Assembly (NCBI GenBank): GCA_904063045.1
Contig: CAJFCJ010000007.1
Span: 554,819 to 618,818, forward strand
Reading direction: 5' to 3'
DNA length: 64,000 bases
Source: Dimorphilus gyrociliatus
Taxonomy: Eukaryota > Animalia > Annelida
Positions within the stretch are counted from its first letter, which is position 1. Each line of letters begins with the position of its first letter. The translations under genes were made by a program, and so were the position numbers. The notes under the pieces were generated by a model that did no database searches, was not told the origin of the DNA, and worked only from the letters and a program-made list of their open reading frames with translations. Positions 1,626 through 10,757 of the stretch are shown here, in pieces.

Positions 1626-4600
1626 ATGCAAAGGATATTATTCATAATCTTTTACGCAACTTGGATTCTTTTACATAATGTTTACGGTACTATAACTGGT
1701 AGAAAAGGTACTCAATTTTCAACAGCTGAATCTGAAGAGAAAATTTTAATGCCTGGTGTCCATCCATCAGTTGTAAGCCGAGATTGTTATTAATGATATT
1801 ACTTTTTCTAATATTTTATTTATTCTCCTAGGAAGATGAATATTTTTGCATCGGAAAAAAACTACACAATTATGAACAATATATAAGTTAGTTTTTGTGT
1901 TTGACTACATTATTTCATAGTCTCAACTGTTTTTAATCTTATCTTTTACATTTAGCATCGTTCGAAGCTTTGGGAAATTCAACGTCTATCCATCATCTAC
2001 TTTTATATGGATGTAAAACACCATACTCGAAGAGTGGAGGATGGTGGAAATGCGGCGCCATTTGCGGTGAAGGAGGACCATCTATTTTATACGCTTGGGC
2101 GAAGAACGCACCACCGGTACAAATGCCACCGAGTAAGTTTTTTCGACGGGTTAATTGGATTTCTTTCAACCTAGATGTACTAATATTTATCCTCTGACAT
2201 CTACAGATGTAGGATTTCACGTTGGCGGTAAAACTCCTGTATCCTATATTGTAATGCAGATCCATTATAAGCATCCCATCGACAGTGAGAATTAAATATA
2301 TATTATATAAATTTTCACTTAGCTAACAAATTATTTAACACAATATCCAGAATCTCAACCAGGTGATAAATCGGGAGTAAAACTAAAAATGACGACAAAA
2401 CCTCAAAAGTTTTTAGCCGGAATTTACATTTTGATGAGATACTTGTTTACAATACCTGCTCATTCAAGTGGAGTTCATTCTGATGTATCTTGTCGATATT
2501 CCGGAAATTCGAAACTATATCCATTTGCGTTTCGGGTTCACGCCCACTCTTTGGGAAGAGTTATATCAGCTTATCAGTATAACGACACAGGCTGGCATAA
2601 ATTGGGTAAAGGAAATCCTCAATGGCCGCAAGCCTTTTATCCCATTAATGAGAATTTAGTGATAAAACCAGGCGATCGATTAGTTGCGAGATGCACTTTT
2701 GATGCTAGAAACAGGAACACAGATACACATATTGGGTAAGTGTTTTCTATTTAGCTCTTTGTTTTTGAATATACTAATTTTCTTTATGATCTTCTCCTCT
2801 TTAGTTCAACTCATAACGACGAAATGTGTAACTTTTACTTGATGTACTATACTCCAGCAACAGTTGGCGGCTCTTATTTCCAATGTGGCGGCGACAATAT
2901 ACCACGATTATCGGATAAGCTTCCAGACGAATCGGATAGCCCCCTCCCACCTAATCCTTTATTAGAGAACTGGGCAACAGGAATTTTATCTTCAGGTAGA
3001 CCAGCTTCTCACTCAAATGCTGAAAATTATGATATTCTTTACGATTATTACGATGTGGATAAACCAAAATATGACTATTATTACGACTCTCCTAACTTTT
3101 TTCCATATCCCTCTTACCGAAAACCCGTAATTCCGAATGTTCAAAGGAAACCACTAATTAAACAGCCACTTATGCAGAGGCCTCACCATGATAACATGGT
3201 AGACCATGGTTCAGTGGAGGCATCTAGAAACAGGGTAACAGAAAAAGTTATCCCTGAGAAAGTGAAAACAGTAAAAACAGTTTGTAAGTTAAAACAAAAC
3301 AGACAGTATGTTGTAATGTAATTTTTCCTGCTTTAGTGTTGTTGGGTTAAGCAATTCAATTAACAAAAAGAAAAACACCAAAATTTTCCAGATTTCCTTT
3401 ATCTTTTATATAATTTCCCCCAAGAAGAGAATATATTAGTACTTGTGTTTCAAGGACTCTTGATTTATTTATCTATTATATTTAAACCTATTTCGTGTTT
3501 CATTTTTCATTTTTTGTTTATATTATAAATGTATTATCTGAAGTGTGGCTGATAATTTAATCATTTTTTCTTTTTCTTCTAATTTCTAATTGAAAAGCCC
3601 CCAAGTACGTGAAAAATTGGCCTAAAGCAGGAATCAAATTTGGACAAATATCAGGCATTGGAACAGATTCTAAGGGAAATGTCCATATTTTCCACAGAGC
3701 CGACAGAATTTGGGATGTAAAGTAGGTTTCTAAGCTTTTAATAAATCATATTGTATGATACGAATAGGAAGTAAGATAATTTTTTTCAGCTCGTTTAATA
3801 GCGACAATACCCTGTATGAGAAGACTCCTATAAAAAACGCAACAATTCTGATATTTGATCCAAAAGGAAACTTAATCAAAAGTTGGGGATCGAATATGTT
3901 CTATATGCCTCATGGACTACATGTTGATAAAGACGATAATGTTTGGGTTACGGATGTTGGCTCACACCAGGTAAAATATTGATTATTTATTCCATATCAG
4001 ACAGTACAGCTACATAAATTATCCAATTTCTTTAAATAGCCATAAAGCGGTACAAGGCAATTTAATTTATCAATTAAAAATTAATATATACAATTACACT
4101 ACGTAAATAATACCTTTATTTGAAAGAGATAATTTTTTTTTTATAGAAAAAAAAGTAAGGTTGTCTCATAGACAATACAAAAAATATTCTTCTCAGACGC
4201 ATGTAGTTCTCTCTCCCATAATAAATGCTCTTAGGTCAGGCGGTGGTGTATCAATAGTATTTATGTAATCCATTCCCAGTAAAACTGGATAATCAACATT
4301 ACTCAAAATAACAAATAGATGATCCCTAGCTGGTTGAAGTCCGTCTATTCTGACTGCTATTTCAGCCATTCCAATAGCATCTTTCCATTGTTGGGAATGA
4401 ATACGAGCTACCTTGTGTAACTTGGTAGATAAAAATTCAGTTATAGGATAATTTCCAAACGATTCGAAAAGAGTTTGAGAAATATATGAAAAATAATGAA
4501 ATTTCGAAAAAGCTACAGTCTTAATTCGTTTGCGATTGATAAATACTCTGCTAGTGAATGTTTCTATTAAAGCAAAATCTTGAAAATTAATTTTATCATT

Positions 4601-7600
4601 CTCCGGAAAGGCTAAACCTCTTGTCCTATAATCAACATTGTCATATATCGGTACTTCAGAATTTTCTTCCAAAACAATTTTTATATCTTTATTTTCAATA
4701 TGCGTCTTTGTCTCTTTTATTTCGCATTCGACACTCTTACAAATCCAAACTATAAGGTCAACTATCAAAGTTATTGTTATGTAGCTTGTCAATATCTGTT
4801 TAATTTCAGAGAGCATTTCCAATTGTTAATTAAAAGTTAATTGAAAAAGTAACTTACCGTTACTATGAGATATCCATAACTTTTACAATGTATAGTTTCA
4901 TGTAATCTACTTATCATTACAAATAATGATATAAGTAACGATACTACTAGAATTAATTTCTTCATTACGAAAGTTCTTTTAATTCTTTTGAATATAAAGA
5001 AAACAGCTGATAGATTGAATATTAGCAGACTATATATGACACATGATAAACTATTAATCTTTTCCATTAATTTACAAATACTAGTATCGACATTTCCATT
5101 GCGTTTCTTTAAGTTTTCAATTTGAAAAATGGCGAGTGGAATTATTGCAATTGAGGCAAACTAAACAGGAAAAAACAGTTAATTTCTTTTTTTATATATA
5201 TAAAAAAGTTACAAAGATTAAAAACTATTGTATATATTTGTTAGTTTATAATACAAAGTATACTTTTTATAGTTAGTTACACAATGGAATGCTACGTAAA
5301 TTGGCCCGTGAATGATTTATTTTTAGCTAAAAAATTACTTTAAAACATACATGACGACTTATTCTCCTATATATGTTTGTATATATAATATAAGTTTCTT
5401 CTACTACATTCATTTGACAACGTATAAAACTGTTCAAACAATAAATTAATCAACTTACCAATCTTGATAGTAAGAGAAAATAATCAAGACAAATCAAACG
5501 TTCCATCAATGCTATTTGTTTTACAGTTATTCGAGCTTCTCTGACTATTGTACTTTTAATTGGTCTTTTTTTTACGAAATAAATTTGTGTACTACTCTTT
5601 TAACAGGTTTTTAAGTTTCCGCCCAATTCAGCAACGCCATCTTTAATCTTGGGAACAAAATTAACTCCTGGAGGTGACGTAAAACACTTTTGTAAACCCT
5701 CCGACGTGGTTACTCTGTCGACTGGAGAATTTTTTATTGCCGATGGGTTTGTAGTTTTAATTCTATTTTACTCAATTTCCTTTTATTCCATTGTATTGTT
5801 TGTTTGTGTTAGGTACTGCAATTCTAGAATAATAAAATATTCGGCTGATGGAAAAGTTATCACACAATGGGGCGAAACACCGGAACCTGGAGAACAGCGT
5901 AATTATTCCTCTAAAATTAAAAAAGAGAAAAAAATGTTATCCTAAATATTAATGAACTAATTTACGTCTTAGTTGACAAAGATGGATTTCCAGCTCCAAA
6001 TAAGTTGTTGGTTCCACACTCACTTGCGGTAAATGAGGATAAGAAATATTTATACATTGCTGATCGAGAACATGGCCGTATTACTACTTTTGATTTTGAA
6101 GGAAATTTTATCTTTCAAACTCATCCTAAAGAGTTTAGCGGAACATTATATTCGGTATCTTACGATAAATCAGCTGGTAAGTATATACTCATAGAAAAAG
6201 TGTCTCAATAAACGGAAAATATCACATATTCAGAATTAATTTATGCCATCAATGGACCTAGTATTTACAAAGCACTCACTGCTGGAGGCTTTACCTTAAG
6301 TTCTACAACCGGTGAACTATTAGCTACATGGTCACCACCTCAAGGTTTTAACCGACCACATGATATCGCAGTCAGCAAGGACGGAACTTCTCTCTATATT
6401 AGTGAAATAGGACCAAACGTCATACATAAGTTTCAATTGAACAATTCAGGTATGCTTACTATATTTGTATTTGTTATAAGAATGCATTACTTATTATGCA
6501 TGGCTGAACCATAATTTATTCGTTGTAATGCACATATGCTTATCCTTCACGAATGCATGTTCCTATACAACTAACGCAGGTATTGCCTTACCTTCGCATG
6601 CGAATCATGTATCTCAACAACACAACCACGCTCAACCATCATATGATAAGGCTAAGAGCGATTTGAATAGTTTTAGGGATCATCCAAAGCATCAGCCTAC
6701 CTTTGGGACTTACAGTAAGAATAGAAATGGTAATCGATTTTCAGACAAAACGATAAGGAGGAAAGGGCATAAGAACGACAATATCGACTTATTAGAGTTA
6801 ATTTTGAGTGATAGAAAAGGGCAATATAAAAATTTATTAGATATCTTAGCTAATTCAGAGGAAGTTGAGACTTTAAAAACAACTTACGAAGACATTATGA
6901 AAGAACTATTGGGAGAATTAAAATCTCAAACTGCTGTTGTGCCCCTTAGCGAGCTAAAAAGTATTGCAAATGCTAGAAATAACACATCAACGCAAAAAAA
7001 ATTAAAAAAATTATTGACGATCTTGAATGGAACAGAGGAAGAGACTATAACATTGGTCGGAAGCATTATCGATGTTGTTACCCACCCTTTAGGTTCTGTT
7101 TACTCTTTACTTTTTCATGGAATTAAATATACTGTATATTGTAAGTTTCGAAATGTAACATTACAAATTTTCTATTAGATAAGCGAAGCTCAACAAAGAC
7201 GACCGACTTTATAACTTCTTCAAAACCAAGTATAATGAAATCTGAAATAAAAGACGATGATATGAAAGCATCAATTATAATTGGATCTTTACTGCTAGTT
7301 CCCGTTATAGTTATCGTTATTGTTGTGGTAATTTTAAGATTAAAACGAAGTGGTAAGTAGGAAAGATAAATAACGCTATTTGGTTCTCGTAATTCTATAT
7401 CAAAAGCAAGCTTTTATTAATAATATTGATTTTAATTAGAATAGTTTCTGGCTTATAGCAGATATTTTGTAGAGTATTTATAAGGAGCATATTGAATGAA
7501 ACCAGAAAGTAATTAATACGCCCTATCAAATCTTTATCTAATCCTATGCTTTTATTAAGAAAATTCAAAAGTATTATTTATAAGTGTTATCATGTATATC

Positions 7601-7970: not shown

Positions 7971-8618
7971 AGAATGAATGATAAGAAAATTACTGTATAC
8001 GAAAATATATATTATACAGTGACTAACTACTTTTACTAGTAAATCTATTGTATAGTTTATTGTACTTCTTTATTGCGTGTCCTAATGTTGTTCATGATCA
8101 TATAAGACTGTTTTTTTTTTAAAACAGTATAAAAAAAGAAACTAAAACAACTTTTGTCAAATATTTTACTGATATCCCTGCACATGTTTATAAATAAAAC
8201 AAACTAACAATATAATATTTCTTTAATTTTTATCCAAAATCTAGACGTTTTAGTGTAAAGTAAAGAATTTCTAAGTAACATAATTACTTCATAATGTTAC
8301 CAACTTGTATAAATATAACATTTTTAAAGGGTGTAATTCAAGTCCACATCTTAAATGGCTGCCAAGGTCTGATTCTATCAATTGTTTTAGTTTTTATTTT
8401 TTCTTTAACACTCGTTGAAATAAAACAACCAAAGTAATTTGGCCCTTTAAAGTGTTCTAGAATAATTGGCCTATTTCGGCCTGTATAGTTTTTAAAGCAT
8501 CTAATCAGTTGTATTTGTAGCAGTTTTATAAAAATTGGCAGTTGGTTAGTATCGATTAAAGAAGTTTCGATTTAGAAAGTGAGTTCTTAGCAGAGACAAC
8601 AGTAGCTTTGGAAACAAG

Positions 8619-10757
8619 ATGGCCTCCAAAAGTATTAACATCTTTGATATCCTTAATAAGAAGTCTGACGGTTCAGAATTGGAAGATGAAGAAATTCAGT
8701 GGTTTGTCAAAGAAGCCTCAAAAGTAACTAATTCGGCAATAAATGATAGTCAAATAGGTATAACTATTTTTTTGTCATCTTTTACTAACAATGGAATATC
8801 GCCAGAAGCACGTATTCTTAGCTTAAAGTCTTTATTTAATCTAAGATAGAAAAAAGAAGACAACAGTTACGGTGTATGATTACGCTCTGATGTTTCACAG
8901 AATCCTTTCAGTCAGTCTTTGCGAAAACTATTCAATAAAATAATGAGAACATTCTGTCAAGCTACACAACGTTTTCTTCTCGCTTTCGTGCCTTTCATTA
9001 GATGCTATCTTCTTTACCTCAATAATTCTTTCAATAATAATCTTTAGATAGTGAAAAGCTGTAAAAGAATAAGTTTTAAAAAAAAATGGTCAATTCGATA
9101 AAAGCTTTAAAATGTCATTTCAACAAGAATAAAAGTATCTTTAAGGCTAAAAAAATAATGTAACGTTATCGTAAATGATAAGGAAGAGATTTTTAAATAA
9201 TTTAATCAATTTTTTATTATCTATTTTAGGTGCTATGCTAATGGCTATAAAACTTAACAAAATGACCCCAAGAGAAGCGGCTTCTCTAACCAAGTCAATG
9301 ACATTTAGTGGCACAGTGCTGCAATGGCCCGAGGAGTGGCAAAACATCCTGGTTGATAAACATAGTACAGGCGGTGTTGGGGACAAAGTCAGCCTTGTTT
9401 TGGCTCCGGCCCTGGCTGTATTCGGTTTAAAAGTTCCTATGATATCTGGTAGAGGGCTAGGTCACACTGGGGGAACATTAGATAAATTAGAATCAATTGA
9501 AGGTTTTCAAGTTCAACAAAGCGAAGAGAGAATCAGAGAGTAACTACATTACTTTTGCTTCATTTAATTAACACCTTTTTTATACAATTGACTGTTGCTT
9601 TTTAGAATTGTAGAGCAGATTGGATGCTGCATAGTTGGTCAAACAAAGAATATAGCACCCTGCGATAAAAAGCTCTATGCAATTCGCGATGTTACAGCAA
9701 CTGTTAATAGTAATTCTTTAATTATAGGCAAGAATCTCCTTTCATAAAACTGTTTAGCCATTAACTCTTTATACTAATATCCGTCCAGCATCTATTTTAT
9801 CGAAAAAAGCAGCAGCTGGTATAAAAACGTTAGTTATGGAAATGACTTATGGAGAAGGAGCTTTAATTAAAACTAGACAATTATCTGAAGAACTCGCAAG
9901 AGAAATAGTAAAATTTCTATTCATTCATATTTTCCTTATCACGCATACAGTCATTTAAATGGCTTTGTTTATTTGATTAATAAATTTTTACTACTTATTT
10001 GCACAGATTGATGTTGGAAAAGAACTTGGTATGAATATCATTGCTGCCATGACCAAGATGGTCTCTCCTATTGGAAAAACCATTGGAAATGCTATTGAAG
10101 TGTTAGAAGCGGTTGACACTTTAAACGGCAAAGGGCCTAAGGATCTTATAGATGTTGTTTGTAAATTGGGAGCTTGTCTCCTTCAATCGACAAATATTGC
10201 AAAATGTTTTGAAGAAGCAGAAAAAATGATGAGATCTACTTTAAATGATAATTCGGCGGCTGAAAAGTTTCGTTTGATGATTATCAAGCAAGGTGTCGAC
10301 GCTAAATTAGCATCTCAGCTTATGAAGGACCCTAGAGAAGTTCTCAAGCTGGCTAGTAGAAAAACAGAAATAAAAAGCAATTCAAATGGAATTGTAAACG
10401 TAATTAGGGGTCTTCCCCTAGCAAAAGTGCTAAGAGAACATCACGCCGGAAGGTTTAGCGTAGAGGATCAGCTGGATTATAAAGTTGGAATAGAAATTTT
10501 AAAAGATGAAGGTGATAAAATAGAAAAAGGTTGGTTATTTAAAGTTTAGACTTCATTATAGCTCAGATATCTTTTATGGCCTTTAATAAAACTAGGCTAT
10601 TATCACATTAAGTATATTTTTGAACGCAATGACAGATGAAACTTGGGCGGTACTATATCACGAAGCAGATTTAACAGCTGACCAAAAAGAGAATATAGAC
10701 TCATCTATAATCATTTCCAGTGAGAAGGAAGAATCTAAAGTCTTTTTACTAAAATGA
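8619..10757 (+). CDS. TYMP: Thymidine phosphorylase (6 exons)
   Basis: [89 protein letters not shown]. Stop TGA 10755-10757. Confidence 0.93.

Follow-up and report, generated by a model that had tools for sequence, protein, structure and literature searches.

A spliced antisense gene nested in a PAM intron of Dimorphilus gyrociliatus encodes a lineage-restricted tetraspan protein with a candidate degenerate retropepsin-like domain

What is housed in the one long intron of a PAM gene, and what kind of protein does it specify? The window, by which we mean the entire 64,000-nucleotide stretch analysed (Dimorphilus gyrociliatus; GenBank assembly GCA_904063045.1, contig CAJFCJ010000007.1, positions 554,819 to 618,818), carries on its plus strand a bifunctional PAM gene with a signal peptide near 1626, PHM-type exons and then NHL-type PAL exons that flank a second, minus-strand gene on both sides. 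With near certainty this nested gene is a genuine, spliced, expressed antisense protein-coding gene. Its product is, on balance, probably a lineage-restricted, membrane-anchored and non-catalytic protein derived from a retropepsin.

The host intron (3971..5606, plus strand) was delimited by a spliced PAM contig that joins 3967/3970 to 5604/5607 with GT..AG ends, giving a length of 1636 nt within the PAL/NHL-repeat coding part; the bordering exons carry NHL-type PAL peptides, and the adjacent PAM introns skipped by the same contig measure 68 and 66 nt. The initial annotation of this DNA, made from the sequence alone, had described a single very large PAM intron at exactly this position, and the contig bears it out. 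As also described, the intron holds two minus-strand open reading frames (ORFs), 4193-4822 and 4837-5067, and all of the peptide motifs then quoted are present in the translation. A 1272-nt transcript contig (run X1, year 2017) maps to 3943-4795, 4858-5160 and 5459-5573. Contigs of run X1 skip introns, as those of a transcriptome do, and since the joints read CT..AC on the plus strand they represent GT-AG introns of a minus-strand transcript. The predicted union of the two ORFs through a 62-nt, phase-0 GT-AG intron (4857/4796) is thus a junction used in RNA. The predicted product of about 270 aa with three hydrophobic segments has to be replaced, since an extra 298-nt intron and an upstream 16-codon exon extend it to 317 aa with four segments. 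The revised model has three coding exons, 5506-5459, 5160-4858 and 4795-4193 (16 + 101 + 200 codons), and both introns are in phase 0; exon 2 begins at 5160, and the ATG at 5067 encodes a methionine inside it.

A word search returned one relative, 58% identical over 200 aa (exon 3), in a second dinophilid-like species, and the orthologue was read from three contigs (L002-L004) of DNA assemblies of three runs. It has the same three exons, with a 16-codon exon 1 that runs from ATG and ends at GTAAGT, a 102-codon exon 2 and a 201-codon exon 3, and splice sites are conserved between both species. The orthologue occupies the same antisense position and orientation, between PAM exons matching NHL and Cu2_monoox_C and with thymidine-phosphorylase exons beyond, as in the window; its host intron is 1647 nt long versus 1636 nt. 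The orthologue and nested synteny that the initial annotation had proposed to look for in related genomes are therefore both present. Nucleotide identity is 64-75% and essentially gap-free in the three exons, versus 39-52% with 7-23% gaps in the introns and the 3' untranslated region (UTR).

Substitution rates were computed exon by exon from one species pair, as pairwise Nei-Gojobori counts summed over exons, and gave a saturated synonymous value (pS) of 0.715 and a nonsynonymous value (pN) of 0.247. For comparison, the two PAM exons flanking the host intron gave a pS of 0.71 and a pN of 0.14. Within the nested protein, pN was 0.19 in the C-terminal domain and 0.43 in the linker that precedes it, and the differences in exon 3 numbered 50, 34 and 88 at codon positions 1, 2 and 3, respectively. 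Saturated synonymous sites combined with low pN indicate purifying selection. A dN/dS near 1, which had been named beforehand as evidence against a functional gene, does not describe this pair (pN 0.25 versus pS 0.72).

In the genome examined (77.9 Mb in 349 contigs) the nested gene is single-copy, so that the many degenerate, dispersed copies with transposable element (TE) flanks, likewise named beforehand, were not seen. Between 2500 and 7500 a repeat scan detected no pairs resembling long terminal repeats (LTRs) or terminal inverted repeats, inspection of ORFs found no gag, reverse transcriptase (RT) or other long ORFs in the host intron, and Rfam found no RNA family in 3900-5700; the earlier statement that no gag, RT or LTR surrounds the gene holds. 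An exhaustive HMMER search with a two-sequence profile against 1.84 billion (1.84e9) protein representatives matched only the known orthologue. The nested gene is a lineage-restricted, taxon-limited protein-coding gene.

What, then, is the protein? Hydropathy, read exon by exon, revealed four hydrophobic segments, so that the predicted N-terminal anchor of approximately 140 residues holds four membrane helices; the initial description of an intron-bearing, multi-pass membrane protein agrees with both the transcript contig and the hydropathy. Coding exon 1 (5459..5506, minus strand; 16 codons from ATG, 75% aa identity with the orthologue) supplies the first part of helix 1 and is joined in RNA to exon 2 across intron 1 (5161..5458, minus strand; 298 nt, GT-AG, phase 0; joint 5160/5459 in the transcript contig). 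Segment 1 spans the end of exon 1 and the first 12-15 residues of exon 2. Coding exon 2 (4858..5160, minus strand; 101 codons) continues with a loop containing a conserved cysteine, helix 2 (segment 2, exon 2 residues 38-58), a strongly basic loop, helix 3 (segment 3, exon 2 residues 63-87), another loop with a conserved cysteine, and the start of helix 4; each of the two outer loops thus retains one cysteine in both species. Segment 4 comprises the end of exon 2 and residues 1-22 of exon 3, on either side of intron 2 (4796..4857, minus strand; 62 nt, GT-AG, phase 0; joint 4795/4858 in the transcript contig). The remainder of coding exon 3 (4193..4795, minus strand; 200 codons and a stop) encodes an acidic, poorly conserved and fast-evolving linker of approximately 50 residues (exon 3 residues 23-74) followed by a conserved C-terminal domain of 126 aa (4196..4573, minus strand; exon 3 residues 75-200), which is 69% identical between the species and may be a degenerate retropepsin-like domain that lacks D-[ST]-G. 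The positive-inside rule would place the basic loop, both termini and the C-terminal domain on the cytosolic side.

Retropepsin descent is the best single reading of the tail domain, and we hold it with moderate confidence on the strength of sequence comparisons. The domain would be a highly diverged, clan AA retropepsin-type domain, closest to Ty3/gypsy proteases, from which the catalytic D-[ST]-G has been lost. Ty3/gypsy copies that include a protease domain are numerous in the D. gyrociliatus genome, which has at least 88 matches to PF13975, and its Ty3/gypsy 'Dingle' family has been described (PMC7854359). Retroelement copies were compared pairwise as natural sequences, and all searches and folding were performed on exon products separately. 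BLASTP against an own-genome Ty3/gypsy protease gave E-values of 1e-5 and 3e-5 for the two orthologues, values that overstate the evidence because the retropepsin hypothesis was picked after the same motif had been seen. Smith-Waterman alignments to natural protease segments of own-genome Ty3/gypsy copies scored 42-58, with z 4.5-8.2 against shuffles. The similarity is collinear: between C-terminal halves, z was 4.8-10.8 with the four copies nearest to the domain and 2.1-4.0 with a further two that are more distant, and it fell to approximately 0 when the halves were crossed. Real decoy segments taken from the window and from contig L002, 281 in all, scored no higher than 42, versus 57-58 for the nested-gene domain. 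Protease exons of the genome's own DDI1 matched the domain less well than did the gypsy proteases (z <=2.2).

The stretch that aligns to Ty3/gypsy proteases in BLASTP, Smith-Waterman and hhalign comparisons lies at 4253..4375 (minus strand) and covers 21-41 residues, reading G..v.v.idg, then FVIL, then VLLGMDY. A C-terminal strand and an hhhG-x-[DN]-hh helix motif are present, collinear with retropepsins, and align to FIVMENLDIAIILGCDFL; in retropepsins this block corresponds to the last strands and to the helix that IIGRNLL forms in HIV protease. The own-genome Ty3/gypsy proteases give the best pairwise similarity, share this collinear C-terminal block (a strand followed by hhhLGxD[FY]h) and have a domain of similar length. 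An ESM-Atlas feature search pointed in the same direction, with approximately 22 of the 30 nearest clusters belonging to clan AA (PF08284, PF13975, PF13650, PF00077; scores 0.92-0.95) for the domain and 23 of 30 for that of the orthologue. We regard these neighbours as suggestive, a lead and not proof.

The initial annotation read the catalytic triplet as FSK or, in another register, as ETF. Direct reading of exons 1-3 in both species found no D-[ST]-G motif, and a retropepsin-like domain would therefore be catalytically dead. The catalytic motif that the initial annotation had found missing is thus absent from both orthologues. FSK as the catalytic triplet had a z of approximately 0 and no alignment support, and was not accepted. 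The ETF register (ALIETF against ALIDSG or ALCDTG) scored z 4.6-5.5 in the window species and 0.6-2.2 in the orthologue, would lengthen the domain by approximately 24 residues beyond the usual, and was not accepted either. As a separate observation, a single 413-aa ORF at C2:1629043-1630284 (plus strand) has a C-terminal retropepsin-like domain that matches PF09668 just below the cut-off (E 7e-5, 23.4 bits) and reads I-S-S-A where the catalytic D-[ST]-G-A would stand; the ORF may represent a further gag/protease-like gene that has been domesticated and is dead.

Several results weigh against retropepsin ancestry. Pfam gave no clan AA match at E up to 10 with exon 3, the 126-aa domain or half-domains of either orthologue (matches to PAP2, OST3_OST6, TYW3 and GDH_HM1 at E 0.06-0.55 were set aside as noise), and NCBIfam returned noise only. 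A PDB sequence search, by single sequence and by profile, likewise found no clan AA match at E up to 10; its matches to Cas12c1, DUF507 and ATP synthase b (E 0.4-1.3) were judged to be chance. Genome-wide scans with PF13975, PF00077, PF08284 and PF09668 listed many retroelement copies and DDI1, and not the nested locus. The comparison with retropepsin family profiles put forward in the initial annotation therefore yielded no match. In hhalign, the two-sequence profile aligned over 17-21 columns to single natural gypsy proteases with a probability of 1.6-14%, and a hidden Markov model of the domain from the two orthologues, run against a set of 406 ORFs drawn from the window and the loci, reached protease ORFs only at E 0.1-0.9. 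Its top non-self match was a 67-aa window ORF (LAFSKF..., approximately 42420-42620, minus strand; 11.6 bits), judged to be chance in AT-rich sequence. AlphaFold2, run on a shallow two-sequence alignment, gave unusable models with a pLDDT (predicted local distance difference test) of 36.0 for the exon-3 product and 33.9 for the 126-aa domain, too poor for a fold search; a two-copy complex prediction of the domain scored 0.02, which is evidence neither way. Alignments of the N-terminal half of the domain to the catalytic-loop region are not conserved. Shared-feature counts in the Atlas were 145-172, mostly within the tool's chance-or-distant-relative range, and scores of 0.94-0.95 are also reached by a few percent of shuffled proteins in the tool's own calibration. 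The retroelement-derived retropepsin of the initial annotation is thus partly supported: the C-terminal block shared with Ty3/gypsy proteases and the clan AA neighbours in the Atlas are suggestive, and the profile searches found no match.

On these same results a serious, though less likely, rival to retropepsin descent is that the nested gene is real and encodes a taxon-restricted tetraspan protein in which the C-terminal domain has a new fold with no relation to retropepsins, the short hhhLGxDY block being due to chance or convergence. Support for a retropepsin from profiles, PDB and folding is missing, significant similarity is confined to approximately 20-40 residues, the exhaustive HMMER search produced no relatives beyond the orthologue, and the Atlas scores are within reach of shuffled proteins. 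However, two different methods indicate the same clan, and the similarity is collinear, is seen in both orthologues and is reached by no real decoy from the same genome.

A retropepsin-like domain could also have come from outside a retroelement, either from a host gene of the DDI1 type or by transfer of a bacterial membrane retropepsin of the APRc type; we consider such an origin very unlikely. ASPRV1/SASPase, DDI1/DDI2 and NRIP2/NRIP3 are cellular animal genes with a retropepsin-type domain outside a retroelement, and ASPRV1 is annotated as membrane-associated. Pfam recognises all of these proteins, and in ASPRV1 and DDI1/DDI2 the catalytic D-[ST]-G-A is retained. In contrast, the nested protein has neither a Pfam match nor D-[ST]-G-A, and its tetraspan N-terminal anchor is foreign to those families. 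PF13975 and PF00077 also match bacterial control genomes, and a similar layout occurs in a bacterial protein: Rickettsia APRc (RC1339) is an active DTG protease, dead as a D140A mutant, with N-terminal transmembrane helices and a C-terminal retropepsin domain (PMC4140852). Like the nested protein, APRc places several such helices, three in its case, ahead of a soluble retropepsin-like domain of approximately 130 residues (PMC4140852). The likeness ends with the layout, since the nested gene is eukaryotic, carries spliceosomal introns and an AT-rich, host-like composition, lacks DTG and has no NCBIfam or Pfam match to TIGR02281-like or other proteins of this type. The comparison with own-genome DDI1 exons (z <=2.2, versus z up to 8-10 for gypsy proteases) argues against the DDI1 source.

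Rich as the genome is in Ty3/gypsy protease copies, the chance that the locus is a decaying TE fragment, or a non-coding antisense transcript with fortuitous ORFs, is negligible, and both are ruled out by the single copy, the lack of LTR, gag or RT around it, the synteny, and a frame intact over three exons in two species with conserved splice sites, saturated synonymous sites and pN/pS far below 1.

How might a retropepsin-derived tail act? Compared with Ty3/gypsy proteases, the nested gene lacks D-[ST]-G, gag, RT, integrase and LTRs; it is single-copy, has introns, is fused to four transmembrane helices and scores below every profile threshold. If the domain is of retropepsin descent, it would not cleave peptides, because the catalytic D-[ST]-G has been lost, and the cytosol-facing, membrane-tethered domain would instead dimerise or bind peptide segments. 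A fuller scenario, which we consider speculative and unlikely as a whole, is that a Ty3/gypsy protease was captured before the two dinophilid lineages split, was fused to a tetraspan anchor and lost catalysis, and that, through its nesting in PAM, its expression is tied to peptidergic secretory cells; its task there would be to bind or sort PAM itself or peptide precursors.

At the 5' end of the nested gene, the transcript contig reaches 5573 and gives a minimal 5' UTR (5507..5573, minus strand) that holds a 36-nt block common to both species (5571-5536, minus strand), reading GACCAATTAA.AGTACAAT.GTC.GAGAAG and containing a CCAAT motif; surrounding non-coding DNA is 39-52% identical. The block sits at the nested transcript start, with approximately 35 nt between it and the PAM exon, and may serve as a core promoter or as an element of the 5' UTR. 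A second non-coding block shared with the orthologue (5290-5332, minus strand) lies inside nested intron 1, reads AAAAATAAATCAT, then GGCCAATTTACG, and may regulate one or other of the two genes.

The 3' UTR region (3971..4192, minus strand) is covered by the same transcript contig and contains two AATAAA signals. One, at 4120-4115, is 72 nt past the stop and agrees with the signal previously placed about 75 nt past it. The other, at 3991-3986, is 16 nt from the PAM exon, and its position is kept in the orthologue (L002 6682-6687), where the distance is 19 nt; a nested transcript cleaved at this signal would run into the PAM exon in a tail-to-tail overlap. The transcript contig continues to the PAM exon, a continuation that may reflect mere graph overlap or pre-mRNA reads, as contigs cannot show the true 3' end. 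Downstream of PAM, the plus strand carries a thymidine-phosphorylase-like gene with Glycos_transf_3 and PYNP_C type peptides (window 8600-10550). The order PAM, nested gene, thymidine phosphorylase is the same in the orthologous contigs, and local synteny is thus kept over at least three genes.

Like nested antisense genes in animal introns generally, this gene is on the opposite strand, wholly within one host intron, with introns and probably a promoter of its own. It differs from them in that its intron is held at approximately 1.64 kb in two species while other introns are approximately 50-80 nt, and in that its 3' end abuts, and may overlap, a host exon. The genome is pared to approximately 75 Mb and its introns measure approximately 50-80 nt; that one of 1.64 kb has been kept at nearly equal length in two species, because a second gene is housed there, illustrates how nested genes constrain genome compaction. 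With no detectable relative beyond its orthologue among 1.84 billion representatives, the locus also offers a clear example, in a laboratory annelid, of a gene that is young, under constraint and restricted to its taxon. Should its tail be a dead retroelement protease on a four-helix anchor, it would represent a new architecture among domesticated retropepsins (DDI1/2, ASPRV1, NRIP2/3) and a new example of a pseudo-enzyme. If the fuller scenario of a captured protease coupled to PAM were true, animals would have their first case of a dead retropepsin anchored in a membrane, and one with a neuropeptide role.

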